From contig NW_026782170.1 of NCBI RefSeq assembly GCF_031769215.1, positions 868,001 through 932,000 of the forward strand: a DNA stretch of 64,000 bases, read 5' to 3'. The position numbers and the translations under genes are program-made. The first letter of the stretch is position 1; each line of letters begins with the position of its first letter. This document shows positions 19,205-45,039 of this stretch, one piece after another. The stretch comes from Ylistrum balloti. Its lineage: Eukaryota. The notes beneath the pieces were generated by a model. That model saw only the letters and a program-made list of their open reading frames with translations. It was not told where the DNA came from and made no database searches.

Positions 19205-22200
19205 ATGACTCTGTGCAAAGGGAAAATTTTGTTTCAGTGCCTGGCGTCATCAAATTCTCGTTTATCAACGTAAGTAAGGACTAATTTGTTATTATCGCTC
19301 AGTAATGCGTTTTCTTGTGATCAGATTGTCTACTCATACGAAACTAACAAAAAATGCATTTTATACAAACCCTCTCCCCACTTCCAAATTCTTGTTTTAA
19401 GTTCACGAGATGTAGTTTTTTAGGCTTATGTCCATCTAGAAGAAATGGTATGCCTCAAAATGACACAAAAATTAACAATAAAACATCTAATTAGTAGAAA
19501 TTCGCTATATGTCTAGCTAAGTCTATTTAAAAACATCATTTGTAAATTTATCTATGGTCCTGATTGTGTTAAAACACAGTTGTACATGCACAATGCTCTG
19601 CAAACATATATCTCAACTTTGAGTCCTAATTATAGAGTCACAAACAATTTTCCATGCATTTCAGTATTTATATGTATGCATGTATGTGTTCTAGATTTTC
19701 AAGTTTACTTTTAGTTTTGCTTCTAGTTCTTTTTGCATCAGATGCTATGTTTTTAGTTTCCTTTCCAAAACAGCACATCATTCTGTGATTTTAAATATTC
19801 TATATTAAGACCGTCAAATTTTTTATCATTCAGAATTATTTCCATAGATTTTACTTGTCTGAATTGCTTACAGGAAAGATATTTTGTTGCTGACAACAAT
19901 TTGAAATGTCTTAAGAAAGCGTTCTTCAAAGGAACGGAACATCCACAAATTTACAACTTGTACAAAATATCAAAATATCACTTTGATAATTTGAGAGAGC
20001 ACATCTACTTGAAGAACTGGTTGTTTGTTTTTAAGTACTTATAAGATATTGTGATGTTTTTTCTTAATTTAATATCTAATATTTACAGTTTTATACAAGT
20101 GCGATCAAAATGGTATTCTGCTCAATACCTGGAACCCACCATAAACGAAAAAGAACTAAAGAAGCCAGTCACAGCTACTGATCCTAGGTTGTTTCGACCA
20201 ATAATGGCACCAAGGACAGAACAATCATTGTCATTCACCTATGTACCAGAAGTTCAGTGAGTAAGATTTTTGGACCTTATCAGACCAGGAAACATAACTC
20301 CAAACAAAGAGCAAAGTACACAAATTTAAGCAGTTGATGGAAAACTTGAACAAGTGCATTGCATGACCATTATATCTGAGACAGAAATAATATTCAGGAT
20401 GCATTTGTATGTTGTTTATAAAACGAAATACTGTTGTTTTTATAAACCATTATGTTGAAGTATATGTATTGTTTTGTAATTATTATGTAATTTGTAAAGT
20501 CATACTTTAAGAAATATGGATAAGAAGAATTCACATTTATTGTTTCATTTTTGCATTGTTAGGAAATTTATCAACATATTGATGAGAAAGGGGAAGAAGG
20601 AGTTATCCAGGAATCTGTTGGAAGAGGTAATTACATATTTTCATTCAGTAATGTGCTGTATGCAAATGAATTTACATGTACAATTATTTAGCATTTGCTC
20701 CTTGTTGAAGCTGTTTTGATGTCCCTGCTATGAAGTAACTGGAGGTATAAGATATTACTGTTTGTTCATGCTTCTCTTTTAAGTCTGTCACAGAGTCTGC
20801 ACTAATTAATGGTGATAGAATTATTAGGATGCTGATATTTTGTGTGGAAATTAATTTGGAGTGAAACACCAATGCTATGCAAAATGGAAAATAATTTGAT
20901 TTATGAATACATGATAGTAATTAGGACTTGCTTGTTAATTATATTTATCATCTTATTGATGTATAATGTAACACTTTCCTGTACTTTTTTTGTAGACCTT
21001 TAAGAAGGTGAAAGTGATACAGTTAAAGAAATATAAGAAGGCAAATAAAGATGAGCAGTCTGAAATAGAGCTTAATCCTGTAAATGTGTTCCTTGAAGCG
21101 GTGGAAAATTGTCGCCCTAATGTTCATACCACAAGAGTCATGCGAGGTGGGGTGTGGTATGAGGTAAGGAGAAAAAACAATAACATGTGTTGTAAAATTG
21201 CCTATCATAGTTAAAGACATCAGAGTAATTGAAAATGACCTATATTTTTTAGGTTTGGTTGTGTTGAATTTGTTTAGTATCAGTTCAAAATGGCCAAGTC
21301 ACCATCAATTTTATGAAACTGATTATCAGAGCTTTTATGTTTTTGTTTCAGCCATTCACTGTAGAATAAAAACTGATTTCATCAATAAATCTTTAAATAT
21401 CTCACTACTGCTATTTCTGCAGGAGATATTGAATGGGTCTTCAGATTTGAAATTCGGATTCTCCTTTGTCACTGATTGTGTATATTTAATAGTTGATCGG
21501 AAGTATTGGATGGCATTCATTTTAAATACTTGTTGAAAACAAAATGCACACCATTTTTAATCAAGATAAAACAAAATTGTGATTAGGAGACATGGAACCT
21601 TGACTTTATGGTGATACATTGTATATGCTACAACTTTAGATTAAGCAGATATCTATATTCTTTTGTGATACTTTTTGTAATGATGATAATTAATTTCAGG
21701 TTCCTATTGCATGTAATCCTGAAACACAGACATATAAAGCCATGACATTCTTGATTAAGAGTGCTGCAGAGAAAGACAGAAAAGCAAAGTTCCCAGACAT
21801 GCTTGCAAAAGAACTCATAGAAGCCAGTAACAATGAAGTAAGAACAACTATAACATGTTTTTGTATTTATTTAGTGTGCAGGTAGTTAATAGAATATTAC
21901 ATGTGTCTAATCCAGGGACAGGGATATGTCAACCTTTGTGTAGGAGTTAAGCAGGTTCGCAGGTTTGTTTAGTGCTGACCAGCCAACCAAACTCTCACAC
22001 AAAGGTGGAGATATCATTCTCCATGAAACAGATTAATGTTTTCTCTTTTTTCTCACATACCAGTACTTTAAAAAAAAACAGCAAAAAATGTAAGTTGTTG
22101 TGAATGTCCCATTAAATGTGTGTCAAAATTGATAACGTTATCAATTTGCAAGATGTACACACTAAATGAAATGACGCCGCTTTTCTATTTTGAGTAGCAT

Positions 22201-22613
22201 TATAGCATGTGCCAGCTGTCTTTCCCTCCCACATAAAAGTATACTATCCCTAGCAACCACACTGTAAAGTTTGTGACAAATTTCATTGCTATGAGTTCAG
22301 TTTTAGATAAAATATGTACCGGTACATGTTGCTTTATTGAAAACATGATCATAGAAATCCAGGCTCTCTCCATCCCTACCCATAAAACATAAACATTTTT
22401 TTAACATAAAATAGCTAGACATGAAAGGCAAGTGTGCTTTATGGGCTTAATGGTTATATTGTATTAATAATTGTTGATTGTTTTTGTTATTGGTTTTGTT
22501 TTAAATATTGAAGGTTGGTTATTGTGTTGCAGGGTAAGAGTGTAAAAAGAAAACAAGACCTACTGAAGCGGTGTGATGACAACAAAGCATTTGCCTCCTT
22601 CAGAAATAGATGA
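19205..22613 (+). CDS. MRPS7: Mitochondrial ribosomal protein uS7m, 227 aa
   Basis: Exons 19205-19269, 20089-20256, 20563-20626, 20996-21163, 21700-21837, 22533-22613 (684 nt). S7 motifs KFINILMRKGKKELSRNLL, NPVNVFLEAVENCRP, RGGVWYEVP, LAKELIEASNNEGKSVKRKQDL...NKAFASFR; AATAAA at 22641. Confidence 0.95.
21912..22022. mobile_element. MITE-like element with ~26-bp imperfect TIRs (MRPS7 intron 5)
   Basis: gatatgtcaacctttgtgtaggagtt (21923-21948) pairs with aactctcacacaaaggtggagatatc (21990-22015). Confidence 0.55.
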
Positions 22614-25200: not shown

Positions 25201-26601
25201 AAGGCAAATTTTAATGTTTTAATGTAATCGAACAAGCTTTTAATACTTCCATACATGACTTTTGAAATTATGGACAAGACAAATATTTGTTTTAAAAGTA
25301 TACATAGTTCTTTTTTCAGTTACTCTATTTTGATATTACTGTCTCCAGCAGCTGGAGTTGGAGTGCCATACAAACACACATCATTCATATTTGCGATATT
25401 TCAGCATAATATTTCTTTTTTGAACGTGATGTTAACAGTTGGAAAACCTCCTATCGGAGAAGACTACCGACAGTAGTGTTTATAATATACTTTGAGCAGA
25501 AAAGGGTCTGGTCAATTTGTTCTTCATTTCTGTCTCTAACATAATAATTTAATGACAATATTCACAATTATCATTCTGTTATCAATATTAACCTTTTTAC
25601 TGAGTATACTCATTTTACTGATTCGTCTTGTAGCTGTAAGTCAATTAAGATTATTTAATTTTCATAAAATCCAACTCACAATAGTATTGAGAATTAATTT
25701 CCCTGTGACAAGCAAGATATGAACACTGTTCTTTACTATCCATTTGCTTTTCGGACATATATGGAACCAAAATACAAACAAAAGAAAAAATATATGTGGT
25801 GTCTATTGAGAAAATACAGCAATGTTACCAATTATTATAGAATTATTCTAATGAGTTATGAAGTTGTACCGATTCTATAGATAAAAAATAAATCACGGAT
25901 GAAGTGACAACAAAAGTGCCTGTCATATTGTTCAGTATATTGAACAGCACCAGAACATTCGTTTTTTTGCAAATGTAAAAATTACATGTATTTTGACCAT
26001 ACAGCTTTCAACAAAGTCTTCTTGAACCTGTCTCTTGAAACCTTATTTAACTTTTATATTTTTCTGACTCTGTTAGATATAATGGTTGTTGGTAGCCTCA
26101 AAAGATCTAACACAGAAAAGATAAGTTTATATCAAACTTCCTACGGCCTAATTGATAAGCTAACATCTATCATTGGTCAACTGTAATGTCAAATTTGAAC
26201 TTTTTTCATCTAGGTTCAGAAACATGTTTAAACTGAAATAACTACGATATATATATAGCATTACATCTTATAAAACAATGCTTGCATGGATAGGCATTTG
26301 TGTTTGTAGTAAAGTGAAAATAAATTGCATCCCGACAGGAACTACTAACAAAAAAAGAAGAACCCTCATTAGGTCTTCCATGTTGATTTCATTACGATAA
26401 ACTTCCATCACATTGTCCTCCATATTGCACTGACCAGTCTGTCATGGCGAAAGATCTCCGCAGCAACATCACAGTGATGTAACACTGTCTGGGATGCCAT
26501 AAGATGACTTAATCGCTGGGAATTTACGCTGTCGTAATGTTTAACATATTTCCTACATTACGACAGACATGGTTGCTTTAGAATGTAAAAATGTTATGTC
26601 G

Positions 26602-29600
26602 CTATGGTGCCAATAATTGAGAAGCTTCAATCATGCCAGCATCTCGAAGCGCCCTTTCCAGCTCTCGGCTATTAGTCTGGCCTCCACTCTTTTCTCTATA
26701 CTTTACCAGGATCAGTGTTGCCTGCAATTGAAAAAGGAACAAAAATAATTGTCTTACGTTGGATTGACTGAAATGAAGAAAACACTAAAAATCAAAAGCG
26801 AACCTTATTTTCCAAGGATGATAAAGATCAGCTTCGGGATAAATCTCTTAACCCGAACAGAGAGATTTCCATTGACAAAGATCCTCTACTAAAAATGGTG
26901 CCAAAACCCGCTATACAAAATTGAGCCTCCTTCACCTAATAATGTTCTCGGCCAAAATTGCAAACGTTCTTTATTGTCGTTACTTTATAGCAAAAAATAG
27001 TCTTGGACGACGGACGGGAAGATGTTGGAAGCTCAAACGTATTTGTTGATCTCGATGCTATTCGTTTATATTTGATACTAACCAGGTGCTTGTTAACTCG
27101 GTGTGATTGATTTTTGTTTGATACTTACCAGGTGCTTGTTATCTCGATGTGACTGGTTTTGTTTGATACTTACCAGGTGCTTGTTATCTCGATGTGACTG
27201 GGTTTTGTTTGATACTTACCAGTTGCTTGTTATCTCGATGTGATTGGTTTTTGTTTGATACTTACCAGGTGCTTGTTATCTCGAGACTTATTTTTCAACT
27301 CGTCGTGGTCCTCCTTGGTAAGACCAAGTTTGTTGCTAAGGCGTTCTAGATCCTTGGTGTATATTTTGTCTGTTAGGTGTCGGATAGTTCGGTCGGATGG
27401 CGTAGCTCGTGCCGTCGACGGTCGACCGATAAACGTACTCGGGGAGGGAGATGGTGCAGCACTAGTTTCTCCGCTTGGCAACGTTACGTCCATCTGGAAC
27501 TGTATATCGCATAAAACTTGTCAAAAGACAGATTTTACTCAGCATGGCAATGGATGTAGAAATGGCGGAGAGGAGTTAAAGCTTAAGACAAATAAATGCT
27601 TTAATTTAGCGAAGTGGGATACGATTGAAAGTTGTCGGAGAGGAGGTGGTAATGGTAAACACTGTCTAAAATACCTCAGGCAAATCTTCATACAGGCGTT
27701 CCCTCATATAATTAGGCAACACTTCGAACTCAAGAACTTGCTGAAGTAGTTCTTCCGGAATGGCTCTTTTGATTCCATCAATAAACTCCTTCTCGCTGAA
27801 GTTACCTGCGTAAATATATACTTATAATTGTACTAATCGACCTCTATAACGATGATCAGAACAGAACTGCAATCATTTAAAGAATACTTGATATACAAAG
27901 GAATATGTTGCTAGAAAGGAAAATAACGAGTACGATAGGACCGTTGGCGGTTGGAATTACCATTTTTGTCGGAGTCCATTTGTTGAAACACGACGTCTGC
28001 AATTCCAGGTATTGCCTAACAAAGAAAGCAATAAATTGATGTAAAAATCAGCCATTTTAACACAAGTGACATCATACAAAGTAACACTATCATTCAAAGG
28101 CGTTGTTTATACACAGTTAAGTTAAATGTTGGAGTGATATATTTCTTTAACGTCTATGCTGGTTTAATGATGTATAGAAGAAACACTCGTCCAAGAGTAT
28201 AATTTGGAGAGGCAATAAAGCTAAAAGCAACTCTAAAAATAAAGGGAAAATGCACGTACTTTTACTAAGTATTGCTATATTTAGATGTACCTTTTTATCT
28301 TCTGGGTTGTTGTACACCAATTCCAAAACCTTTATAAAATTTGCCCGCGTCACATTCTTTGCACTTCCTAGCAGGTTGAATATAGCTGAAAAATAAGTCA
28401 AAGATAGTTATTTTGAAACTCCGCTCAATAATGTTCACTCGATGTATTGCAGTTATCTATATTCGAGACAATTAGTTATACATCTCTTTAAATAATATCT
28501 CAATCATTGCAAAATATTTTGTTTAAGTACTTCCACGAGGAAATTTCTATGACGAAAATGATAGGAAATGAATATATGTCCGAAAGTAATACATACTAAT
28601 CCTGAAGATAGAGGACCATAGATACACTAAAACATCTTATAATGTGTGGCATTCTACAGGATCGGACGTGGCTTCCAGGGGTATTGGAGAACGTAGCGAC
28701 ACCCCATACTATATCAACACTGCCTTCTGCTGCAGGAAATAATTTAGTGTCCTTCTCCCGCTAGAATTCGAGATTGTCTTTGACTTCTATTAATGCAATA
28801 TTCAAGAAATAGAAAATGATCAGTGGTCCCTATAGTAATACTCCTATTTGCGTTCGTTCATTTCTGTGCTATTTGCCTGTTAGTGTCCAAACAAACCTCG
28901 CAGCTTTGTGTCCGTGTCTCCGGCCTCGCACCACTTCATCCCTCTAAGGAAATTTTCAAATGTCAACTTCTTTTTACTGGACAGGAACATCTTTAAAATC
29001 TGAAAATCGCTTACTTGTTTATATGGTGTGAAGGGTGATATCTTAAAAATTGGTCTTTGAAAAAAATACCGATGGATCAGTATTGATGGAATATACTTAT
29101 CCCATGTACTTAAACTTAACGAATGAGTCTTTTCTGAAGCTGTTTACTTCCGGTATCGTGAAGGTCTTATTACATAATAAAGGTGTCAGTTTCATGTAAA
29201 TTAATCCCCTGGCCAATCATTTAGTTTGGTGTATTGTACTTGCTCAAATACTGCTGGCCCCAACTAGATGTGATGTATTCATCCCATAAATGAAAGCCCC
29301 AGCTTGATGTGATATTCTCACTCCGTTACTTAAGGTGCCAGTTTGATGTGATGTACTCACCCCATTACTGAAGGCAAGTTTGATCTGATGTACTCACACT
29401 ATTACTGAGGGCGCCGGTTTGATGTGATGTACTCATCCCATTACTGAGGGCGCCAGTTTGAAGTTACTGAAGGCAAGTTTGATCTGATGTACTCACACTA
29501 TTACTGAGGGCGCCGGTTTGATGTGATGTACTCATCCCATTACTGAGGGTGCCAGTTTGATGTGATGTACTCATCCCGTTACTCCCGTACTCACACTATT

Positions 29601-32600
29601 ACTGAGGGCGCCGGTTTGATGTGATGTACTCATCCCATTACTGAGGGTGCCAGTTTGATGTGATGTACTCATCCCGTTACTGAGGGCGCCAGTTTGATGT
29701 TATGTACTCATCCTATTAGTGAAGACACCAACTTGATGTTATGTACTCACCCCATTACTGAGGGTGCCAGTTTGATGTGATGCAATCACACTATTACTGA
29801 GGGCGCCAGTTTGATGTGATGTACTCACCCCATTACTGAGGGTGCCAGTTTGATGTGATGTACTCACCCAGTAAATGAAGGCCCCAGTTTGATATAATGT
29901 ACTTACCCATTACAGAAGGCGCCAACTGGATGTTATGTACTCACACTATTACTGAGGGTGCCAGTTTGATGTGATGGACTCACCCCATTACTGAAGGCAA
30001 GCGTTTGAAGTGATGTACTCACCCCATTACTGAGGATGCCAGTTTGATGTGATGCAATCACACTATTACTGAGGGCGCCAGTTTGATGTGATGTACTCAC
30101 CCCATTACTGAGGGTGCCAGTTTGATGTGATGTACTCACCCAGTAAATGAAGGCCCCAGTTTGATATAATGTACTTACCCATTACAGAAGGCGCTTACTG
30201 GATGTTATGTACTCACACTATTACTGAGGGTGCCAGTTTGATGTGATGGACTCACCCCATTACTGAAGGCAAGCGTTTGATGTGATGTACTCACCCCATT
30301 ACTGAGGATGCCAGTTTGATCTGATGTACTCACACTATTACTGAGGGCGCCGGTTTGATGTGATGTACTCATCCCATTACTGAGGGCGCCAATTTGATGT
30401 GATGTACTCATCCCGTTACTGAAGGCGCCAGTTTGATGTGATGTACTCACACTATTACTGAGGGCGCCGGTTTGATGTGATGTACTCATCCCATTACTGA
30501 GGGTGCCAGTTTGATGTGATGTACTCATCCCATTACTGAGGGTGCCAGTTTGATGTGATGTACTCATCCCGTTACTGAAGGCGCCAGTTTGATGTGATGT
30601 ACTCACCCCATTACTGAGGGTGCCAGTTTGATGTGATGCAATCACACTATTACTGAAGGCGCCAGTTTGATGTGATGTACTCACCCCATTACTGAGGGTG
30701 CCAGTTTGATGTGATGGACTCACCCCCATGTACTTACCCATTGAGGGCGCCAGTTTGATGTGATGTACTCATCCAGTTACTTAAGGCGCCAGTTTGATGT
30801 GATGTACTCACCCCATTACTGAAGGCAACCGTTTGATGTGATGTACTCACCCCATTACTGAGGATGCCAGTTTGATGTGATGTACTCACACTATTACTGA
30901 GGCCGCCGGTTTGATGTGGTGTACTCATCCCATTACTGAGGATGCCAGTTTGATGTGATGTACTCATCCCGTTACTGAGGGCGCCAGTTTGATGTTATGT
31001 ACTCATCCTATTAGTGAAGACACCAACTTGATGTTATGTACTCACCCCATTACTGAAGGCACCAGTTTGATGTGATGTACTCATCCCATTACTGAGGGCG
31101 CCAATTTGATGTGATGTACTCATCCCGTTACTGAAGGCGCCAGTTTGATGTGATGTACTCACACTATTACTGAGGGTGCCAGTTTGATGTGATGTACTCA
31201 CCCCATTACTGAAGGCAACAGTTTGATGTGATGTACTCACCCCATTACTGAGGATGCCAGTTTGATGTGATGCAATCACACTATTACTGAGGGCGCCAGT
31301 TTGATGTGATGTACTCACCCCATTACTGAGGGTGCCAGTTTGATGTGATGTACTCACCCAGTAAATGAAGGCCCCAGTTTGATATAATGTACTTACCCAT
31401 TACAGAAGGCGCCAACTGGATGTTATGTACTCACACTATTACTGAGGGTGCCAGTTTGATGTGATGGACTCACCCCATTACTGAAGGCAACCGTTTGATG
31501 TGATGTACTCACCCCATTACTGAGGATGCCAGTTTGATGTGATGTACTCACACTATTACTGAGGGCGCCGGTTTGATGTGATGTACTCATCCCATTACTG
31601 AGGGCGCCAATTTGATGTTATGTACTCATCCTATTAGTGAAGACACCAACTTGATGTGATGTACTCACACTATTACTGAGGGTGCCAGTTTGATGTGATG
31701 TACTCATCCCATTACTGAGGGTGCCAGTTTGATGTGATGTACTCATCCCGTTACTGAAGGCGCCAGTTTGATGTGATGTACTCACCTATTACTGAAGGCG
31801 CCAGTTTGATGTGATGTACTACATTACTGAAGGCGCCAGTTTGATGTGATGTACTCACCCCATTACTGAGGATGCCAGTTTGATGTGATGAAATCACACT
31901 ATTACTGAGGGCGCCAGTTTGATGTGATGTACTCACCCCATTACTGTACTCATCCCGTTACTGAAGGCGCCAGTTTGAGGCGGTTTGATGTGATGCCAGT
32001 TTGATTTGATGTGATGTACTCACCCCATTACTGAGGATGCCAGTTTGATGTGATGCAATCACACTATTACTGAGGGCGCCAATTTGATGTGATGTACTCA
32101 TCCCGTTACTGAAGGCGCCAGTTTGATGTGATGTACTCACACTATTACTGAGGGCGCCGGTTTGATGTGATGTACTCATCCCATTACTGAGGGTGTCAGT
32201 TTGATGTGATGGACTCACCCCATTACTGAAGGCAACCGTTTGATGTGATGTACTCACCCAGTAAATGAAGGCCCCAGTTTGATATAATGTACTTACATTG
32301 AAGGCGCCGTTTGATGTGATGTACTCACACTATTACTGAGGGTGCCAGTTTGATGTGATACTCACCCTATTACTGAGGGCGCCAGTTTGATGTGATGTAC
32401 TCACCCCATTACTGAGGGTGCCAGTTTGATTGATGTGATGTACTCACCCCATTACTGTTATGTACTCACACTATTACTGAGGGTGCCAGTTTGATGATTA
32501 CTGAAGGGCCCCAGTTTGATGTGATGTACTCATCCCATTACAGTTTGATGTGATGTACTCACCCATCCCAGTTTGATGTGATGTACTCACACTATTAAGG

Positions 32601-34096
32601 CGCCAGTTTGATGTTATGTACTCACACTATTACTGAGGGTGCCAGTTTGATGTGATGTACTCACCCCATTACTGAAGGCGCCGTTTGATGTGATGTACTC
32701 CAACTTGCCAGTTTGATGTGATGTACTCACACTATTACTGAGGGCGCCAGTTTGATGTGATGTGCCAGTTTGATGTGATGTACTCACTCCCATTACTGAG
32801 GGGCCAGTTTGATGTGATGTACTCACCAGTTTGAAGGCGCCAGTTTGATGTGATGGACTCACCCCATTACTGAGGGTGCCAGTTTGATGTGATGTACTCA
32901 CCCCATTACTGAGGGTGCCAGTTTGATGTGATGCAATCACACTATTACTGAAGGCGCCAGTTTGATGTGATGTACTCATCCCATTACTGAGGGCGCCAGT
33001 TTGATGTGATGTACTCACCCCATTACTGAGGGTGCCAGTTTGATGTGATGTACTCACCCCATTACTGAAGGCGCCAGTTTGATGTGATGTACTCACCCCA
33101 TTACTGAGGATGCCAGTTTGATGTGATGCCAGTTTGATGTGATGTACTCACACTATTACTGAGGGCGCCGGTTTGATGTGATGTACTCATCCCATTACTG
33201 AGGGTGTCAGTTTGATGTGATGGACTCACCCCATTACTGAAGGCAACCGTTTGATGTGATGTACTCACCCCATTACTGAAGGCAACCGTTTGATGTGATG
33301 TACTCACCCCATTACTGAGGATGCCAGTTTGATGTGATGCAATCACACTATTACTGAGGGCGCCAGTTTGATGTGATGTACTCACCCCATTACTGAGGGT
33401 GCCAGTTTGATGTGATGTACTCACCCAGTAAATGAAGGCCCCAGTTTGATATAATGTACTTACCCATTACAGAAGGCGCCAACTGGATGTTATGTACTCA
33501 CACTATTACTGAGGGTGCTCGTTTGATGTGATGTACTCACCCCCTTGACGAAGGCATCATGCTTGATACCTTGTACAATTGAGTCTGTGATCACTCCATC
33601 CTTATTACAGCCAAGCTGACGGAACCGGAACCATAATCTCTCCGTTTCTGCAATACTCACTGTAATATTATCATTCTATCTGTAACTACCAAGGTTTATA
33701 GAAACTCTCAACGTCCACAGTGATATATTAACTATATATAAACACTGTAAAATTACTCCAACACTATATCAAGGCTTTCATTGTGAGCTGTTATATCGTT
33801 ATTTATTGAAATCACGTAAAATAAACTTCGTCTTCACATTACTGATCAATGCGTTCGACACCTTAATGTCATGTATTTCATTATATTATGTAGTTTTAGA
33901 TATAAGCCTAAAAAGAGCTAGGAATTGGACAATTTTTGACATAAAACATTGATTAAATGATCATGGGCCAAGTTAACTTACGTTCTGTTGCTATCGCATG
34001 GGTTGTGATCCAGTTAGCGTCCGTAGGTTTAATCTTGTCTTTGACGACCAGGCAATCCGAGTCGGGCAGAAATATTAAACTGGCCACGGAACCCAT
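26602..34096 (-). CDS. Unnamed 323-aa protein: N-myristoylation motif + calcineurin B/CHP-like EF-hand region + Ser/Pro/Thr linker + C-terminal death-domain-like module
   Basis: Eight GT-AG exons, all phases compatible: 34096-33982, 33659-33541, 28999-28897, 28385-28291, 28015-27961, 27805-27675, 27499-27266, 26721-26602 (972 nt). Starts MGSVAS; ELSIAETERLWFRFRQL (CHP-like first helix); LTFENFLRGM...DTDTKLRAIFNLL; canonical EF loop DSDKNGNFSEKE; C-terminal LERLSNKLGLTKEDHDEL...LATLILVKYREKSGGQTNSRELERALRDAGMIEASQLL. Confidence 0.85.
27066..27290. repeat. Five-copy 45-46 bp tandem repeat spanning the exon 7 donor of the EF-hand/death-domain gene
   Basis: gatact(t/a)accag at 27074, 27120, 27165, 27211 and 27257. 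Confidence 0.9.
29255..33540. repeat. ~4.3 kb 39-bp satellite filling intron 2 of the EF-hand/death-domain gene
   Basis: Unit gtttgatgtgatgtactcaccccattactgagggtgcca. It explains all the STSHQTGALSNGV ORFs in the track and abuts the exon 2 donor at 33540. Confidence 0.97.
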
Positions 34097-34339
34097 TACT
34101 GAAATACAGAGAGTAACGGCTAAAGATACAACATTCAGATAATTCTATTTGGGGAGGGATGGATGTCACTCCAAAGGCGGAGGATTGGATAGAAATAGGA
34201 GAGGGGTGAAATATTACAACACACGGAGGGATTGGAGGGTAAGGTGTCACTACATAGAAAGGGTTTGGAGAAGGGTGAATGCCACAGCACACGGGGACCT
34301 CTATATATTAAATACTGGCATGCATTTTGTAAATATAAT

Positions 34340-35720: not shown

Positions 35721-36529
35721 GTAAGTACATGTAATACCTACCCATGATAACTACACATACTCACAAATAATGTATGTCTCTTTGTTTCGATAGATAATCC
35801 ATGAACATTCTTACCTGTTTCAAAATGATCGCACTATTGAAAAGCTTCCTAATAGAACCTCTGTTTAGCGTTAACAACTCTTGAAATTTCTCTGTGTCTA
35901 GGCCACTCTCCAAAGATAACACTGCTCTCTGCAAGTCCCTGCCATCACGTTTCATGAAGGGACATACATTTTAAATATATTTGTTTTATTTATTGGAATG
36001 CTTGTCAGTTGCATACAATTTGATATTGAATATTTTCATTTGTTTTAAATATTTACGCGAAATGTTTTTATATATAAAACCCAGTCCGAATTGAGGCCGT
36101 TTGCTACACCGGTACTTATGTTTCCAATGGGACTTAAACGTTATAATGGTTGAAAATTCTATAAATGTATTAAGTTGACTGTTGTGCTGTCGAGGTGATA
36201 GAGTGCACGTCGGTTAATTTATCACGGACTGAGTCCTTGTAGAGTTGTATAGAGATCACAGTTCCATGTGTACGATCCCTTTGTCATAGCCGTTCCTCCC
36301 CAAAATAGTGCGTCCGATAATATCTAATTGTTGTACATACCAGATTTTGATCGCTTACCAAAAACAGTCGAGACCCCTATACGAGCTTGGTGGTATTTTT
36401 CCCCACACGATATCAAGTAATTATCATCACTGTATTTCCGTGTCGCTTTTTAGGATATTCTAAGTAGACACAGGGTGTAATGAAACAATTTGCCATTGTT
36501 CATACATTTAGTTACATGATATATATAAC

Positions 36530-38845
36530 TTTTCACCACACCATCCGTAGTCACCACACCACCCGTAGTCACCACACGATCCGTAGTCATCGTAGTCACC
36601 ACACCACCCGTAGTCACCACACCACCCGTAGTCACCGTCGTCGCCACACCACCCGTAGTCACCGTAGAAACCGTAGTCACCATACCACCCGTAGTCACCA
36701 CACCACCCGTAGTCACCGTAGTCACCACACCACCCATAGTCACCGTAATCACCACACCATCCGTAGTCACCGTAGTCACCACACCACTCGTAGTCACCAC
36801 ACCACCCGTAGTCACCACACCACCCGTAGTCACTGTCGTCGCCACACCACCCGTAGTCACCGTAGAAACCGTAGTCACCATACCACCCGTAGTCACCGTA
36901 GTCACCACACCACCCGTAGTCACCGTAATCACCACACCATCCGTAGTCACCGTAGTCACCACACCACTCGTAGTCACCGTAGTCACCACACCACACGTAG
37001 TCACCGTAGTTACCGTAGTCACCAAACCACCTGTAGTCACCACACCACACGTAGTCACCGAAGTCACAACACCAACCGTAGTCACCACACTACCTGTAGT
37101 CACCGTAGTCACCACACCACCCGTAGTCACCGTAGTCACCACACCACCCGTAGTCACCGTAGTCACCACACCACCCGTAGTCACGGTAGTCACCACACTT
37201 CCCGTAGTCACCGTAGTCACCACACCACCGTAGTCACCACACCACCCGTAGTCACCGTCGTAGCCATACCACCCGTAGTCATTGTAGTAACCGTTGTCAC
37301 CATACCACCCGTAGTCACCACACCATCCGTAGTCACCGTAGCCACCATACCACCCGTGGTCACCACACCACCCGTAGTCACCACACCACCCGTAGTCACC
37401 ACACCACCCGTAGTCACCACACCACCCGTAGCCATGGTAGTCACCACATTTCCCGTAGTCACCGTAGTCGCTACACCACCGTAGTCACCACACCACCCGT
37501 AGTCACCGTAGTAACCGTAGTCACCATACCACCCGTAGTCACCACACCACCCGTAGTCACCGTAGTCACCACACCACCCGTAGTCACCACACCACCGTAG
37601 TCACCACACCACCCGTAGTCACCGTAGTCACAACACCACCGTAGTCACCACACCACCCGTAGTCACCGTAGTCATCACACCACCCGTAGTCACCACACCA
37701 CCCGTATTCACCGTAGTCACATCACCACCTGTAGTAACCACACTTCCTGCAGTCACCACACCACCCGTAGTCACCGTAGTCACAACACCACCCGTAGTCA
37801 CCACACTACCTGTAGTCACCGTAGTCACCACACCACCCGTATTCACCGTAGTCACAACACCACCTGTAGTAACCACACTTTCTGTAGTCAACACACCACC
37901 CGTAGTCATGGTAGTCACGACACTTCCCATAGTCACCACACCACCGTAGTCACCACACCACCCGTAGTCACCGTCGTCGCCACACCACCCGTAGTTACCG
38001 TAGTCACCATACCACCCGTAGTCACCGTAGTCACCATACCACACGTAGTCACCGTAGTCACTACACCATCCGTAGTCACCGTAGTCACCACATCACCCGT
38101 AGTAACCGTAGTCACCATACCACCTGTAGTCACCACACCAGCTGTAGACACCGTAGTCACCACACCACCCGTAGTCACCGTAGTCACCACACCACCCGTA
38201 GTCACGGTAGTCACCACACTTTCCGTAGTCACCACACCACCCGTAGTCACCAGTCACCACACCACCCGTAGTCACCACACTACCCGTAGTCACCACACCA
38301 CCCGTACTCACAACACCATCCGAAGTCATCACACCACCCGTAGTCACCACACCACCCATAGTCACTACACCACCGGAAGTCACCTTAGTCACCACACCAC
38401 CCGTTGTCATCGTAGTCACAACACCACCCGTAGTCACCGTAGTCATCACACCACCCGTACTCACCTCACCAACCATAGTCATTACATCACCCGTAGTCAC
38501 CACACCACCCGTAGTCACCATACCACCCGTAGTCACCACACCACTCGAGGTCACCGTAGTGATCACAACACCCGTAGTCACCACACCACCCAGTCACCAC
38601 ACCACCCACAGTCACCACACCACCTGTAGTCACCACACCACCACCCATAGTCACAACACCACCCCACCCGTAGTCACCAGTCACCACACCACTTGTAGTC
38701 ACCACACCACCTGTAGTCACCACACCACCCATAGTCAGAACACCACCCGTAGTCACCACACCACCTGTAGTCAGCGTAGTCACCACACCACTTGAAGTCA
38801 CCGTAGTCACCACCCCACCCGAAGTCACCACTCCACCCCACCTGT
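36530..38845. repeat. Complex low-complexity array built from CACCGTAGT / CACCACACCACCCGTAGT subunits
   Basis: Direct reading; it generates the RSHHTT, VVTTGG and DYGWCG ORFs. Confidence 0.97.
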
Positions 38846-38989
38846 AGTGAATGTGGGTTATTTTGTTTGTGCTACCAGTTCTTTGTTATTTTTCGATGGT
38901 GTTATCTGTACTAATCCTCCAGCAATGCCAGTCATATTCAAACTGTATGTACTTGGGTTTCTCAATGTTACTCAATGCTGCCAAATGAA

Positions 38990-39255
38990 CCATTGGACCA
39001 TCTCTACAATTGATGTTACAATAATTCTTGTTATTTCTACATTCGGTACCTGGTAACAGTGACCTCCTTACTTTGACCATCACTACACTTGATGTTACAA
39101 TAATTCTTGTTATTTCTACATGCGGTACCAGGTACCAGTGACCTCATTAGTTTGACCATCTCTACACTTGATGTTACAATAATTCTTGTTATTCATACAT
39201 TCGGCACCGGGTACCAGTGACCTCATTACTTTGACCATCTCCACACTTGATGTCT
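38990..39255. repeat. 79-bp tandem repeat, about 3.5 copies
   Basis: tgatgttaca-type anchor at 39011, 39090, 39169 and 39248. Confidence 0.85.
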
Positions 39256-42200
39256 GCTTCAGTGCTTCAATCACTTCCCTATCCTCACATTCACCGTCTT
39301 CTTCTGATTATGTTCATCTTCATCCACATTTTGCTATCCTCACACTCGTCTGATACCAACAATAATCAGACCATTTGGATCATCTCTGCACCTGATGCCT
39401 GCTTCATTTGTTTTTTTGTGTGTGTGTATCTTTGTTCACTTTTTGCTGTCTTCACACTCAGTATTTGTTACCATCACATTGGCTATTCACTGTCTTTCCT
39501 ATGTCAATCTACTTTCAATCTTTTTGTCTATACACATATTTGGTGTCTGCTGCTCATCATGTGTTTATTACCAAGAGAAGCCTTTAAACAGGTAACTTAC
39601 AAATCTAGTCATCAAGAGTTCTCAAAAATAAGCTGCTCACGTATATGGAAACGTATATGTATGGGAGGGCTATAAAACTGAAACAGCTGATTATTCAGTA
39701 TTCAATGTCTTGCAATTAAACAGTATTGTTAAAGGAAAAACAATAGTTGTAAGAGTAACAAAATGGCATATGTTTACAATGAAGTATAGCCTCACCAATC
39801 ATGGTAGTTTGTCCACGCATGTGTTAAAATAAAACCATTTCAAAAATCTTAACTTACACTTCAGAAAATCAGCAAACATCTAAACATCTGAAATATTAAG
39901 AGATTTATGTTCCCTTACAGATATAATTCAATGTAGGTATGCGTATTCATTACCAGTTTATTTATTAGAACTCTAATAGTTGCTTTCTTTCTGTCAGTCC
40001 AAAACTGTGTGGAATGACTTATCTGAACACTGAAATATTGCGTAATTAAAAACAAGTTTAATAAATAGCAGGTGAATATTGACATGTACACAGATATATT
40101 TGTGTGTACAACTATGTTTGTGTTACATCATATTATTTTTGAGAATATCAATCCAGTATTAGAAAATTTCCATTAAATGTGTAGCCCGCCTCTCACCAGA
40201 TTTGCGCAGATTAAAACCTGTCACTGCAAATTTTATCCAGATCTTTTATCCAATTATCCAAGAAAAGAACATGGTATACACTTTCTGAGTTTATGAGAAT
40301 AATTAGATGAGATTTGTTGATATAATCATTACTGTTTTGTTCCACAGGCTTCTCTGTGCTATAAATGATACATAGCTCGCGACTTACTGAAGTCTAGCAT
40401 TTTTCGACCAGTGATACCCTAACTAGAATGCTGAGTCCCTGAAACTCATTCTCCATCACCAAATCATGATGATTAATCATCACACATTGTATTTTTTTTG
40501 TTAGTAATTTAGAATTGTTTCGGTGTTCCGTTTATACGATCTGGTTACCTACAATGCTCAGAAAGCAACACCAAGACCAAAAATATCATAAACATAAATT
40601 TACTCAAATATTACATAAGCATCAACATCATCGACAACAATATCTCAAGATGGAGACATAATAAATATATATGGGACCATTGTCCAAGTCAGGAGAGGAT
40701 ACATGGAACATGTCTTGTGGCTTTGAGATAAGAAATGTAGGAAAGGGCATCAAAAACTATATTAGAGGAATCATTACCAACATTTTTTCAGGATATAGTT
40801 AGATCAAACTTGGGTTAGATTGTGAACATGTTAAACACAAATTTCGTTACATGATGTGATATAACCATCGAGAAAACATGCATATCATTTTTTTTTCTTT
40901 TCCAAACATTTCAAATATGGTATCTTACCAGATGTAGAGCTTTGTTTTGGAATAAGCCTGCTATTTATCTGGTAAAAAAATTGAAAAAAAAAAAGAAATA
41001 ATATTTTGTTTTATCTAATCATATGTAAAAAATAACTTTTCATTAAAAACAATACTTTTTTGTCATTTGAATACGTTCTTTGTGTACATTGAAAAGGAAA
41101 GTTTTGTCATCATTACAGTGTTCTGTGAATGGCTGGTAGATGAATATACCGGTAACATATGTGTGATGTGATAGATACAACTTGAGGTTAGAACCATAAT
41201 CTTGCTGTTTGCTCATCTATCATCATAAAGTTTAATGATAAATGATTGTTAAAGTAACAGACTATATTGTATTAAGTTCAAATTTAGTGAAGTTAATAAA
41301 ACATGTTATTGACAATCAAGATTAAAAATAAATATTTTCCTTCACTCAAGGTTAATGAATTACATGCCATGAAACATTCAATATAGTAATCATATATCAC
41401 ATCGATGATCCTCAGAAATTAATATTTGCAATATATATTTGTATGTGTCGTAAAATTTTGTGTTTTTTTCTTAAATGAAACTGTCATCTGTTCTTTGTAT
41501 AATGCTGTTAGAGTTTTCATTATATCTGACTCCTAGGACATTGAAAGTAACTCTAGGTCATTTCTTTTGGAAAACTTGATAACATTCCATTACACAAGAC
41601 CTTCATCAAATATCAGGATAATGGGGTGATGAAACCAAGACAGCCTCACACCATACTGCTATAACTTTTAGCCCAAGTCAGCACCCAGTTTACCATTATC
41701 CTAAGACAACCCATCAAATGTACCAGGTAGTAGAATATCTAAAGCAATACTGGCTGTGACTTTTCCTTAAAGTGTAAAACCTAGACATTTATGTGAGGAA
41801 ATGTAAAGACACTCCATCTCAGTTTACCTATGGGTATAACTTAAGTTCTTAAAACGTAATATGTTTTTCACAACTGCAACTATGGTCAAGGCCATTTATA
41901 TGAAGAATGCATCATGCCATTTGAGATACCAAATCTGGGGATCCTGATTCAATGAAGCTTTCACAGAAAATTGCTGAAAGTGAGAAAAGGGACGCTTCAT
42001 AGGAAGTTTAAGGGAACATTCTGTTATGTAAGCTGCAAACATATCATGCCACTGTTTAATCCTTAGATAACAGAAATCTGTTTGTTTGTTAAATAACTTG
42101 TGATGTCATTATGGTATTTGATAACATCAGATGTTACCTATCTATCCAAAATATGAGTCAGATGCATTATTGCTAACTCACTGAGTCATCTTCATAATAA

Positions 42201-42334
42201 ATAATCATTATTTCCATCGAAATGATTTCAAATTAACATTCTAAACATTGTGTATTGTTGACATGATTTTGTTATTGTTTCTACAGAGGCAGGCACTGGG
42301 ACTGGAGTTACTAACATTAGTGTCACACATGTAG

Positions 42335-43480
42335 ATATGCCTCCATGTCTCCATCATGACGCATACCTACATACCGAGTATATCCATCATGACACATGCC
42401 TACATACCAAGTATATCCATCATGTCACATGCCTACATACCAAGTATATCCATCATGACACATACCTACATACCAAATATATCCATCATGGCACATGCCT
42501 ACATACTGAGTATACATGACACACCTACATAATATATCCATCATGCCTACACATGCCTACATACCGAGTGTATCCGTCATGACACATACCTACATACCGA
42601 GTATATCCATCATGACCTACATACCGAGTATATCCATCATGACACATGCCTACATACCAAGTATATCCATCATGACACATGCCTACATACTGAGTATATC
42701 CATCATGACACATGCCTACATACCAAGTATATCCATCATGACACATGCCTACATACTGAGTATATCCATCATGACACATACCTACATACCAAGTATATCC
42801 ATCATGACACATATCTACATACAGAGTGTATCCATCATGACACATACCTACATACAGAGTATGTCCATCATGACACATACCTACATACCAAGTATATCCA
42901 TCATGACACATACATACTGAGTATATCCATCATGACACATACCTACATACCAAGTATATCCATCATGACACATGCCTACATACTGAGTATATCCATCATG
43001 ACACATGCCTACATACTGAGTATATCCATCATGACACATACCTACATACCTAGTGTATCCATCATGACACATACATACAGAGTATATCCATCATGACACA
43101 TACCTACATACTGAGTATATCCATCATGACACATACCTACATACCTAGTGTATCCATCATGACACATACATACAGAGTATATCCATCATGACACATACCT
43201 ACATACTGAGTATATCCATCATGACACATACCTACATACTGAGTATATCCATCATGACACATGCCTACATACTGAGTATATCCATCATGACACATACATA
43301 CTGAGTATATCATCATCACATGACACATACCTACATACCTAGTGTATCCATCATGACACATACATACTGAGTATATCCATCATGACACATACCTACATAC
43401 CTAGTGTGTCCATCATGACACATACCTACATACCGAGTATATCCATCATGACACATGCCTACATATCCAGTACCTCCGTC
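42335..43480. repeat. 33-bp minisatellite
   Basis: Unit gagtatatccatcatgacacatacctacatact; source of the MTHAYIPSISI and MCHDGYT ORFs. Confidence 0.95.
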
Positions 43481-45039
43481 ACAACACATGCCTAAATTTC
43501 CTGTACATCCATCATGTCATACACCTTAATTCTGTACTCATAATTGCAGCAGTCAATCATCAATATACTGTGGTCACCTTATCTTGAATAAATACCCCAC
43601 TCATATCACACAACATTCCCACATACATTTAACTCACATGGCATACTTATAAACCCCACTCACATTTAATTAATTTACACACATGTATACTTACCTTACA
43701 TAACATACTTATCAACTTGACTCACATTAACCAGTTTACATACATGTATATGACCTACTTATACGACACACTTTTGTACCTAACTCATACCTAGCTCATT
43801 TATATATCTGTATTATTTACTCACATTTTTCACTTGTGTATTATATTAGCATAACACACATGAATAATCTACTCATATATATACCACATTATGCATTATG
43901 GTATTGCACAAGTAAGTAGTTTCACCACTTACTACATTATATCATAACACATTCAACAGGGCTTTAGCCATTTATGTTGGAAGAAGACTTACCTGATTAA
44001 AAAAAAAAAAAAAATTAAATGCAAGTTTTATTTTTAAAACAAGTCTGTTCACATTCTGGCTTCACCTTTACATAAACAGAGATAAAACAACAGCATTTTC
44101 CTGCATTAAAAAATACATGCTGGTAACACTATGATCATTAATACTGTAGCCTCAGACATACTATCTAATCTAACTCGGACATGATACAAATTTGTCATCA
44201 CATATATTGTTACCATGGTGAAAGGAGATCCTACAATAATCACACTAGGATTGAGGAATAAACAGATTAGACGGTGCCTGTTATTTTTCTCTCCAGTTGT
44301 TAGTGTTACAGTCTTCAGTCATGCTATCAGGGGAGATAACTCCTTTACTTTTGACAACAAAAGTATACAGCACCAACATAACAATAACAAAGGAATACAT
44401 ATATATCGGTGGTATAAATTACAAAATGACAAACTTACTCAAAATAAACAAAGCAGTGTCAACTCACATTTTGTGGATTGTAGGGAAAAACATAAATTTC
44501 CCTAAAATATATTAATGTATGTTAATAAAGAAGGGGAAAAAAGACATTTATTTTGACAATATTAAGGACAATGAAATATAACACCATCATACAATATCCT
44601 CAAGTATATTTCTTTTGACTTCAGCTACTACATGAAAAATCATAAAAATATTTTGATATAAGGGGATAATCAACTGTAAATATATTTTCTGCAATAGGCA
44701 CTATTGATGTGCACCTTACAAGAACATAGGAAGGTTGCCAATTTGAACCATCCCACCCCTTATCACTTATGCTTATCACTAAACAGATGCAGGATGGTCT
44801 AAATTGGTACCCTTCCTTTCAGTTAAATAAAATGCAAAGTTTGGAATCAAGTCTGTATTTGATTGAAATGTCATATTTATATTATATCTGTATAAAGGTG
44901 TGTGTATACATGAATACTGGGTTCACTGTAATGCTTATGTTAATCTCGTGAATTATTGCAAAATTCAATATTTCTTGGTTTCAACACAATCTCATCACTT
45001 AAAATTTCCTGTTGTCAATGACAAAACACTCATTATATA

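Follow-up and report, generated by a model that had tools for sequence, protein, structure and literature searches.

An uncharacterised scallop gene encoding a predicted N-myristoylated EF-hand protein with a C-terminal death domain: a candidate membrane-anchored death-fold adaptor

Gene structure and annotation

The stretch of DNA analysed here, hereafter the window, comprises 64,000 nucleotides (nt) of the genome of the scallop Ylistrum balloti (assembly GCF_031769215.1, contig NW_026782170.1, positions 868,001 to 932,000 of the forward strand). On its minus strand, at 34096-26602, lies a gene that an earlier reading made from the letters alone (the sequence-only reading) had described as an unnamed fusion of a myristoylated EF-hand protein with a death domain (DD), and as a candidate Ca2+-regulated death-fold adaptor. 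The gene and its product are referred to below as the window gene and the window protein.

Splicing of the eight exons by script gave 972 nt in frame, encoding 323 amino acids (aa) with one terminal stop, and GT..AG borders were found at every intron when the minus strand of 26400-34300 was read. The exons and their phases are those that the sequence-only reading had put forward. The spliced product is identical, residue for residue, to the database protein XP_060071342.1 ("uncharacterized protein LOC132551246 [Ylistrum balloti]"; P0001), which was retrieved by an exhaustive HMMER search with exon 7 alone (100% identity, residues 207-284). The gene is thus still uncharacterised and without a name, as had been claimed, but it is already a public model and belongs to a mollusc family of about 60 members. 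Pfam searches with single exons of the gene gave only sub-threshold hints, because the domains are split by introns. The coding features are as follows.

33982..34096, minus strand: coding exon 1, 115 nt; codons 1-38 plus 1 nt, with the ATG at 34096-34094 and the MGSVAS codons 1-6 at 34079-34096
33541..33659, minus strand: coding exon 2, 119 nt; family-invariant ELSIAE.ERLW.RF.QLG helix and degenerate EF1 loop (residues 55-66); its donor is the start of a 39-bp intronic satellite
28897..28999, minus strand: coding exon 3, 103 nt; degenerate EF2 (residues 83-95)
28291..28385, minus strand: coding exon 4, 95 nt; degenerate EF3 (residues 117-129)
27961..28015, minus strand: coding exon 5, 55 nt; EF4 entering helix together with the first half of the EF4 loop
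27675..27805, minus strand: coding exon 6, 131 nt; second half of the EF4 loop, exiting helix, C-terminal helices of the EF-hand domain and invariant LPEF motif
27976-27961 plus 27805-27786, minus strand: EF4 loop (residues 158-169), split by intron 5
27266..27499, minus strand: coding exon 7, 234 nt; disordered S/P/T-rich linker (residues 207-240, including an 18-aa clade-specific insert), then, from 27397 downward, DD helices 1-3 and the first part of helix 4
26602..26721, minus strand: coding exon 8, 117 nt plus the TAG stop; DD helices 4 to 6, with the end of the DD near 26614

An acceptor-like sequence, tctgtatttcag (ending tttcag), was observed at 34097-34110, 2 nt upstream of the ATG. 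This placing suggests an mRNA whose first, 5' exon is non-coding and whose second exon has the start codon at its beginning.

EF-hand domain, calcium sites and myristoylation signal

The N-terminal part of the window protein was compared with known proteins by profile and by fold. A profile of 15 N-terminal domains (N-domains) of the family gave matches ranging from 4e-13 to 5e-5, among them KChIP4 (4e-13), calcineurin B (1e-10) and CHP1 (1e-6), and it also matched NCS-1, calaxin, CHP2 and plant CBLs. Calcineurin B was aligned to this profile over positions 38-176, so that all four EF-hands were covered. A Foldseek search with the whole model grouped the N-domain with NCS-1, CHP2, hippocalcin and KChIP1, with a probability of 1.0 and target template-modelling (TM) scores of 0.55-0.70. 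As modelled, the N-terminus is a four-EF-hand fold like that of calcineurin B and of the NCS, CHP and KChIP proteins. In the same kind of search, no reviewed Swiss-Prot model was aligned over both the EF-hand domain and the DD.

The four EF loops were then compared across 45 family members. EF1 to EF3 have no ligand residues in any of the 45, and the degeneracy that had been noted for the first three loops of the window protein therefore extends to the whole family. In the window protein, EF2 reads FLSSKKKLTFENF and EF3 reads LLGSAKNVTRANF, both with no acidic ligands, and EF1 reads GCNKDG, which is not the CPxG signature. The EF4 loop of the window protein (residues 158-169) is DSDKNGNFSEKE. 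Family-wide, EF4 keeps D at position 1, G at position 6 and an invariant E at position 10; its position 12 is occupied by a non-acidic residue (Q, G, S, A, N or K) in almost every member outside the clade formed by the window gene and its scallop orthologues, hereafter the window clade. The set D1, D3, N5, G6 and E12 occurs only in the window clade, in which it is invariant across four scallop genera. By parsimony, this ligand set would have been derived in the scallop copy. The sequence-only reading had called the loop canonical; the loop and its ligands are indeed present, but it is only near-canonical, as its F at position 8 does not match PROSITE PS00018 and its Pfam EF-hand_1 score is 21-23 bits against a cut-off of 25.4. 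Of the two domain hits that had been expected from HMMER, the Death hit exceeds its cut-off and the EF-hand hit does not.

Because EF1 to EF3 are degenerate and EF4 position 12 is non-acidic in nearly all other members, calcium sensing does not appear to be a conserved property of the family, and in the window protein one site (EF4) at most may bind calcium. The recoverin-type Ca2+-myristoyl switch of NCS proteins needs EF2 and EF3. Such a switch is unlikely in the window protein, since both of these loops are degenerate; with its EF1 also deviating from CPxG, the protein departs from the NCS type. Hence the label "Ca2+-regulated" finds little support, as three of the four loops are dead and the fourth is near-canonical only in a scallop-specific clade.

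It is nevertheless worth weighing whether the window protein is a true calcium sensor, as in the sequence-only reading, in which Ca2+ at the EF-hand domain, possibly through a Ca2+-myristoyl switch, would gate membrane association or exposure of the DD and so couple Ca2+ transients directly to signalling by the death fold. The full ligand set in EF4 and its invariance in the four scallop orthologues, the Pfam score on this loop and the fold shared with the NCS, calcineurin B and CHP sensors all speak for such a role, and the derived ligands were afterwards held at a ratio of non-synonymous to synonymous substitution rates (dN/dS) of about 0.04, as would be expected if binding had been gained and kept. 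On the other hand, the remaining loops are degenerate in every member, including the pair on which an NCS-type switch relies; EF4 itself misses both the PROSITE pattern and the Pfam cut-off; the acidic position 12 is missing in nearly all other members; and a lone site in an unpaired EF-hand is usually a weak binder. We consider a calcium-sensing role unlikely on balance, though not negligible.

The window protein starts with MGSVAS, that is, Met-Gly, a small residue at position 3 and Ser at position 6. An MGxxxS/T start fits the consensus of N-myristoyltransferase. Such a start is conserved throughout the family, in bivalves and gastropods alike: 41 of the 45 aligned members start with MG, 40 of these 41 have S or T at position 6, and the members with no MG start look truncated or mis-started. 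The window protein is predicted from this start to be N-myristoylated, and the consensus that the sequence-only reading had recognised is found to be a family-wide feature.

Death domain and linker

The full window protein scores 24.9 bits against Pfam Death (PF00531) at residues 246-320, and the isolated residues 235-323 score 28.7 bits, where the curated cut-off is 22.6 bits; exon 8 alone matches positions 49-82 of the Death profile, and paralogues of the family reach 43-58 bits. When a profile of 22 family C-termini was compared with the PDB, it matched the DDs of RIPK1 (6e-11), FADD (5e-9), ankyrin-3 (7e-9), CRADD (3e-8) and THOC1 (9e-8), as well as NRADD, PIDD, TNFR1 and Fas, and the solved DDs of RIPK1, FADD, CRADD and ankyrin spanned 6e-11 to 3e-7. 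On the strength of these matches of the family profile to solved DDs, the C-terminus of the window protein is judged to be a genuine DD proper and not a CARD, DED or PYD.

The predicted structure agrees with this assignment. An AlphaFold2 (AF2) model was built with 45 family sequences and has a mean predicted local distance difference test (pLDDT) score of 75; it superseded a 10-sequence model with a pLDDT of 57. Six DD helices are predicted at residues 242-252, 257-263, 268-277, 281-295, 302-311 and 315-319, with a block pLDDT of 74-93. The third match of a cluster search of AlphaFold DB was a DD protein aligned to residues 143-323. The linker between the two domains (residues 203-240) is S/P/T-rich and is disordered in the AF2 model, with a pLDDT under 50, against 86-93 for the part of the DD that exon 7 encodes. 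The sequence-only reading had seen the helix pattern of a DD in the last 80 aa or so and had named the lack of a six-helix fold as grounds for abandoning the idea; the Pfam score, the family profile and the six helices between 242 and 319 all bear it out. The identity of the DD rests on Pfam, on the profile search against the PDB and on the helix count, the structure comparison having been made with the whole model.

Family, phylogeny and origin

Searches with the protein, with the family alignment and with the N-domain profile recovered about 60 family proteins of roughly 300-325 aa, and all of the named ones are molluscan. They come from bivalves (scallops, pearl oyster, oysters, Sinanodonta, Mercenaria, Mya, Mactra and Solemya) and gastropods (Lottia, Patella, Haliotis, Pomacea, Littorina, Batillaria, Aplysia, Elysia, Biomphalaria, Lymnaea, Arion and others), and carry automatic names such as "uncharacterized", "Death domain-containing protein", "ankyrin-3" (Aplysia) and "THO complex subunit 1-like" (Ylistrum). 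The gene tree largely tracks species groups, which is consistent with the family appearing to be a single-copy gene in most of the mollusc lineages sampled.

The scallops depart from this pattern. The four scallop orthologues of the window gene make up one clade, whose sister is the canonical scallop paralogue (support 98/95). The stem of this clade, with 1.03 substitutions per site, is the longest internal branch of the tree, and its terminal branches measure 0-0.085. Both copies lie on one chromosome in Pecten, and the genomes that carry the window-type copy have kept the canonical one as well. An 18-aa insertion in the linker is specific to the window clade, and all four of its members carry replacements at 17 of 90 positions that are otherwise highly conserved in the family, including W257L, W292Y, Q284L, A261S/C, the NNG motif of EF3, R135 and H201. 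From the tree and the alignment, the window gene is a Pectinidae-specific duplicate that diverged in a burst and was then tightly constrained.

A history of this kind raises the possibility that the diverged copy is a regulatory decoy, which would compete with or modulate the canonical paralogue (P0011 in Ylistrum) through non-productive binding of the target of the N-domain or of the partner of the DD. Its origin by duplication of a canonical gene that is still present, the long stem branch, and the replacement of conserved positions, among them both core tryptophans and several surface positions of the DD, are in line with this idea. However, selection on the two domains, and even on the linker, is as strong as that on a fully functional protein, and the DD fold is confidently predicted, so that we hold a decoy function to be distinctly improbable.

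The origin of the architecture was traced outside the molluscs. A 212-aa orthologue in the brachiopod Lingula anatina, which consists of the N-domain only, starts with MGAFVS and matches the N-domain at 3e-55; its gene has a head-to-head ARA70-domain neighbour, as does the family gene of Ostrea (L011 1-9464). A Death-domain gene model lies on the same strand, 10 kb downstream (for the whole Lingula arrangement, L006 1-5869, 10001-13232 and 23070-23232). When family members were searched against the Lingula locus by tblastn, the N-domain exons were found and the 10-kb flank showed no DD; the start of the annotated DD gene falls at the very end of the locus fetched. This arrangement suggests either a split annotation of one gene for an EF-hand and DD protein or an unfused ancestral state. 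The best match in the AlphaFold DB cluster search was DgyrCDS13999 (A0A7I8WC83; 321 aa), aligned over residues 1-321 with 27% identity and E = 1.4e-16, which is likely, from its locus-tag prefix, to come from the annelid Dimorphilus. Because of these two homologues, the combination of EF-hand domain and DD is probably older than the molluscs.

One family member, P0026 of Babylonia areolata (471 aa), has an internal duplication of EF4, the C-terminal helix and a segment of the linker, with LPEF occurring twice, about 137 aa apart. This may be a tandem exon duplication, or an artefact of assembly or annotation.

The canonical scallop paralogue (306 aa) has a co-oriented 308-aa Peptidase_C14 (caspase) gene about 6-7 kb upstream in both Ylistrum (L005 1-3711) and Pecten (L010 1-3112). 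At the loci examined, no caspase lies beside the family genes of Ostrea (oyster) or Aplysia; the neighbourhood is therefore suggestive at best and carries little weight as a functional clue. It bears on the question of whether the DD has anything to do with death signalling. The DD could instead be a general protein-protein module, as in ankyrin, THOC1 or UNC5-type contexts, serving as the tether for a complex of a membrane transporter or channel, with no immune or apoptotic role. The automatic names "ankyrin-3" and "THO complex subunit 1-like" and the corresponding matches of the DD profile suggest such a scaffold, and so do the nearest folds of the N-domain, CHP and KChIP, which are constitutive subunits of transporters and channels, and the single-copy, housekeeping-like appearance of the family in most sampled molluscs, which is not that of an expanded immune family. 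Against it stand the top matches of the DD profile, which are RIPK1 and FADD, and the caspase gene that adjoins the canonical paralogue in two scallops, though not in oyster. On balance, we consider a scaffold outside death signalling unlikely, though not negligible.

Integrity of the gene and selection in scallops

The window gene was compared with its orthologues in Pecten maximus, Mizuhopecten yessoensis and Argopecten irradians, the exons being placed by exact protein-to-genome threading. The exon lengths of 115/119/103/95/55/131/234/120 are identical in the four scallop genera, and the intron lengths differ several-fold. Each of the four orthologues stands tail-to-tail with a Ribosomal_S7-family gene (MRPS7 synteny). 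The Ylistrum paralogue P0011 has the same eight-exon plan, with lengths of 109/125/106/95/55/131/180/120. Its close relative P0009 was found as an uninterrupted open reading frame encoding both domains on assembled contigs of 1.6-1.8 kb; these contigs derive from spliced RNA, since the reading frame is uninterrupted though the gene is intron-rich.

The Nei-Gojobori dN/dS among the scallop orthologues is 0.04-0.07 overall, with 0.035-0.08 for the N-domain, 0.044-0.09 for the linker and 0.043-0.057 for the DD, at a synonymous divergence (dS) of about 0.9-2. Comparison of three resequencing runs with the window listed 41 differences in 26450-29150, of which 36 are non-coding and five exonic, all five synonymous.

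These results bear on whether the gene model is an artefact, either a chimera that fuses two neighbouring genes or a pseudogene. RNA reads over the junction of exon 6 and exon 7 of the window gene were not at hand, which leaves some room for this explanation. The same junction and the same exon lengths, however, are found in the four scallop orthologues, and the junction recurs in the paralogue; intronless paralogue transcripts span both domains; about 60 members from independent genomes and transcriptomes share the architecture; and dN/dS is about 0.05 where dS is near 1 or higher. As exon lengths and synteny are shared, dN/dS is low and paralogue transcripts cover both domains, the window locus is regarded as a functional protein-coding gene, and a chimera or a pseudogene as very unlikely.

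Repeats and surroundings of the window gene

Two tandem repeats overlap or adjoin splice donors of the window gene, and two further genes lie on its downstream side.

29255..33540, minus strand: satellite in intron 2, with about 100 copies of a 39-bp unit; its first unit begins at the exon-2 donor, and each unit has a GTGAGT donor-like site
27071..27284, minus strand: 46-bp tandem repeat, 4.7 copies; it covers the last 19 nt of exon 7 and repeats the splice donor four more times
19205-22613, plus strand: Ribosomal_S7-family gene, 227 aa; neighbour of the window gene, tail-to-tail and syntenic in the four scallop genera
about 16953 downward, minus strand: LRR/PRAME_C-domain gene, 526 aa; beyond the Ribosomal_S7-family gene

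The orthologous intron 2 of Mizuhopecten (L003 10849-16764) also holds an array with a 39-bp unit, of about 150 copies, which begins 15 nt inside exon 2. Its unit includes the exon end plus the donor, and the remainder differs from the Ylistrum unit. In Pecten and Argopecten, intron 2 is short (1050 and 533 nt). At exon 7, reading through the first donor leads to a TAA after 12 codons, so that use of the downstream donor copies would truncate the DD.

Upstream of the gene, 36001-40000 and 42001-44000 show a markedly negative GC skew of about -0.4 with an elevated G+C content of 0.44-0.51; the public annotation calls no gene in these two intervals. An Rfam scan of the window gave no match.

Proposed mode of action

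Taken together, the results are best read as describing a membrane-anchored death-fold adaptor that would combine a myristoyl anchor, an EF-hand clamp and homotypic recruitment through the DD. We put the probability of this reading at roughly 0.6. The product would be a cytosolic protein of 323 aa consisting of a four-EF-hand globule (about residues 28-202), the linker (203-240) and the DD (241-320). The myristate would keep the protein at a membrane. The EF-hand domain would mainly clamp a helix of a partner, in the manner of CHP with NHE1, KChIP with Kv4 and calcineurin B with calcineurin A, and the DD would recruit or join a homotypic DD oligomer of the RIPK1/FADD/CRADD type. Calcium would act at most via EF4, which is near-canonical in the window clade only. 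An immune or apoptotic role is plausible from the similarity of the DD to those of RIPK1, FADD and CRADD.

Several observations weigh against the adaptor reading. The DD core tryptophans of helix 2 and helix 4 are replaced in the window clade by L257 and Y292, as the sequence-only reading had seen, where the rest of the family has W at 90% (position 257) and 100% (position 292); both replacements are hydrophobic, and the AF2 prediction of the fold stays confident. A single-sequence phmmer search of the PDB with the window DD alone gave no match, because the sequence is too diverged. The Foldseek search with the whole model was dominated by the N-domain and ranked only EF-hand proteins in the PDB and Swiss-Prot. 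The DD profile resembles the DDs of ankyrin and THOC1 too, whose roles are not in death signalling. The runs that hold the window locus are genomic DNA only, and three low-coverage runs gave collinear, intron-containing contigs and no exon joints; in the protein collection searched, the window clade has no transcript-derived copy. Finally, whereas gene structure, domain identities, conservation, selection and phylogeny were determined here, we infer the lipidation, partner binding, calcium binding, DD oligomerisation and pathway by analogy.

A bolder version can be formulated for the scallop copy, in which an EF-hand that had been blind to calcium over all of molluscan evolution regained its full ligands after the scallop duplication and turned the protein into a membrane-anchored, Ca2+-gated nucleator of a DD signalosome. 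We think this rather unlikely. If true, it would be a direct link from Ca2+ to the death fold that is undescribed in any animal, standing beside a calcium-insensitive ancestral paralogue for natural comparison.

Comparison with known systems and significance

Close parallels of the N-domain are CHP1/2/3 and calcineurin B, which share with the window protein the myristoylation consensus, the four-EF-hand fold and partly degenerate EF loops; CHP2 and CHP1 were matched by Foldseek at target TM scores of 0.58-0.64. They serve as constitutive subunits, each clamping a helix of a membrane or enzyme partner. Unlike the window protein, they keep two to four working Ca2+ sites, where the window protein has at most one, and they have no linker, no DD and no counterpart of the family-invariant NWIT.HA...ELSIAE.ERLW motif. 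The window protein is only 18-23% identical to them, with no orthology. A CHP orthologue was considered and ruled out, as the identity in structural alignments is about 20% and sequence searches return only the mollusc and brachiopod family.

The NCS and KChIP proteins (NCS-1, hippocalcin, recoverin, KChIP1-4) likewise have a myristoyl N-terminus and a dead EF1, and they give the best profile match (KChIP4, 4e-13) and the best folds (NCS-1 and KChIP1, target TM up to 0.70). In contrast to them, the window protein has degenerate EF2 and EF3, which the Ca2+-myristoyl switch of NCS proteins uses, and its EF1 has no CPxG signature. To our knowledge, no NCS or KChIP protein has a death domain.

With FADD, CRADD/RAIDD, RIPK1 and MyD88-type adaptors, the window protein shares the C-terminal DD and the layout of a small two-domain adaptor with a flexible linker. 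Its partner domain, however, is a lipid-anchored EF-hand module (the lipid being predicted) and not a DED, CARD, TIR or kinase domain, and its DD has neither of the two conserved tryptophans. Within the mollusc-wide family (Aplysia "ankyrin-3", Pecten LOC117332222, Ylistrum "THO complex subunit 1-like"), the architecture, the eight-exon plan and the MGxxxS start are the same at 35-49% identity, and the window gene stands apart as a scallop-only diverged copy with the linker insert, the near-canonical EF4 and the 17 replacements.

The onset of NF-kB, inflammatory and apoptotic signalling in animal cells is governed by death-fold adaptors. Those that have been characterised, as far as we know, all pair the death fold with another death-fold domain, a TIR domain or a kinase. 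The death-fold adaptor is thus a kind already known, and what is new is the predicted lipid-anchored EF-hand partner module. The sequence-only reading knew of no characterised protein with this architecture, and we found none: searches for the architecture and for six gene identifiers returned no description in the full-text literature searched, and no reviewed protein entry spans both domains. An immunome paper on Aplysia mentions an EF-hand only in a ROCO-TIR protein (PMC9334734).

The family has been overlooked because of its automatic labels "uncharacterized", "ankyrin-3" and "THO complex subunit 1-like". It offers a small, tractable candidate for how lophotrochozoans may couple membrane or calcium events to DD assemblies. 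In scallops, the pair formed by the canonical copy and the diverged copy, with its apparently regained EF4 ligands, would be a natural experiment on the gain of calcium sensitivity. Research on bivalve immunity and mass mortality has had no mapped adaptor pathways to work from, and a conserved adaptor of this kind could give it a useful entry point.

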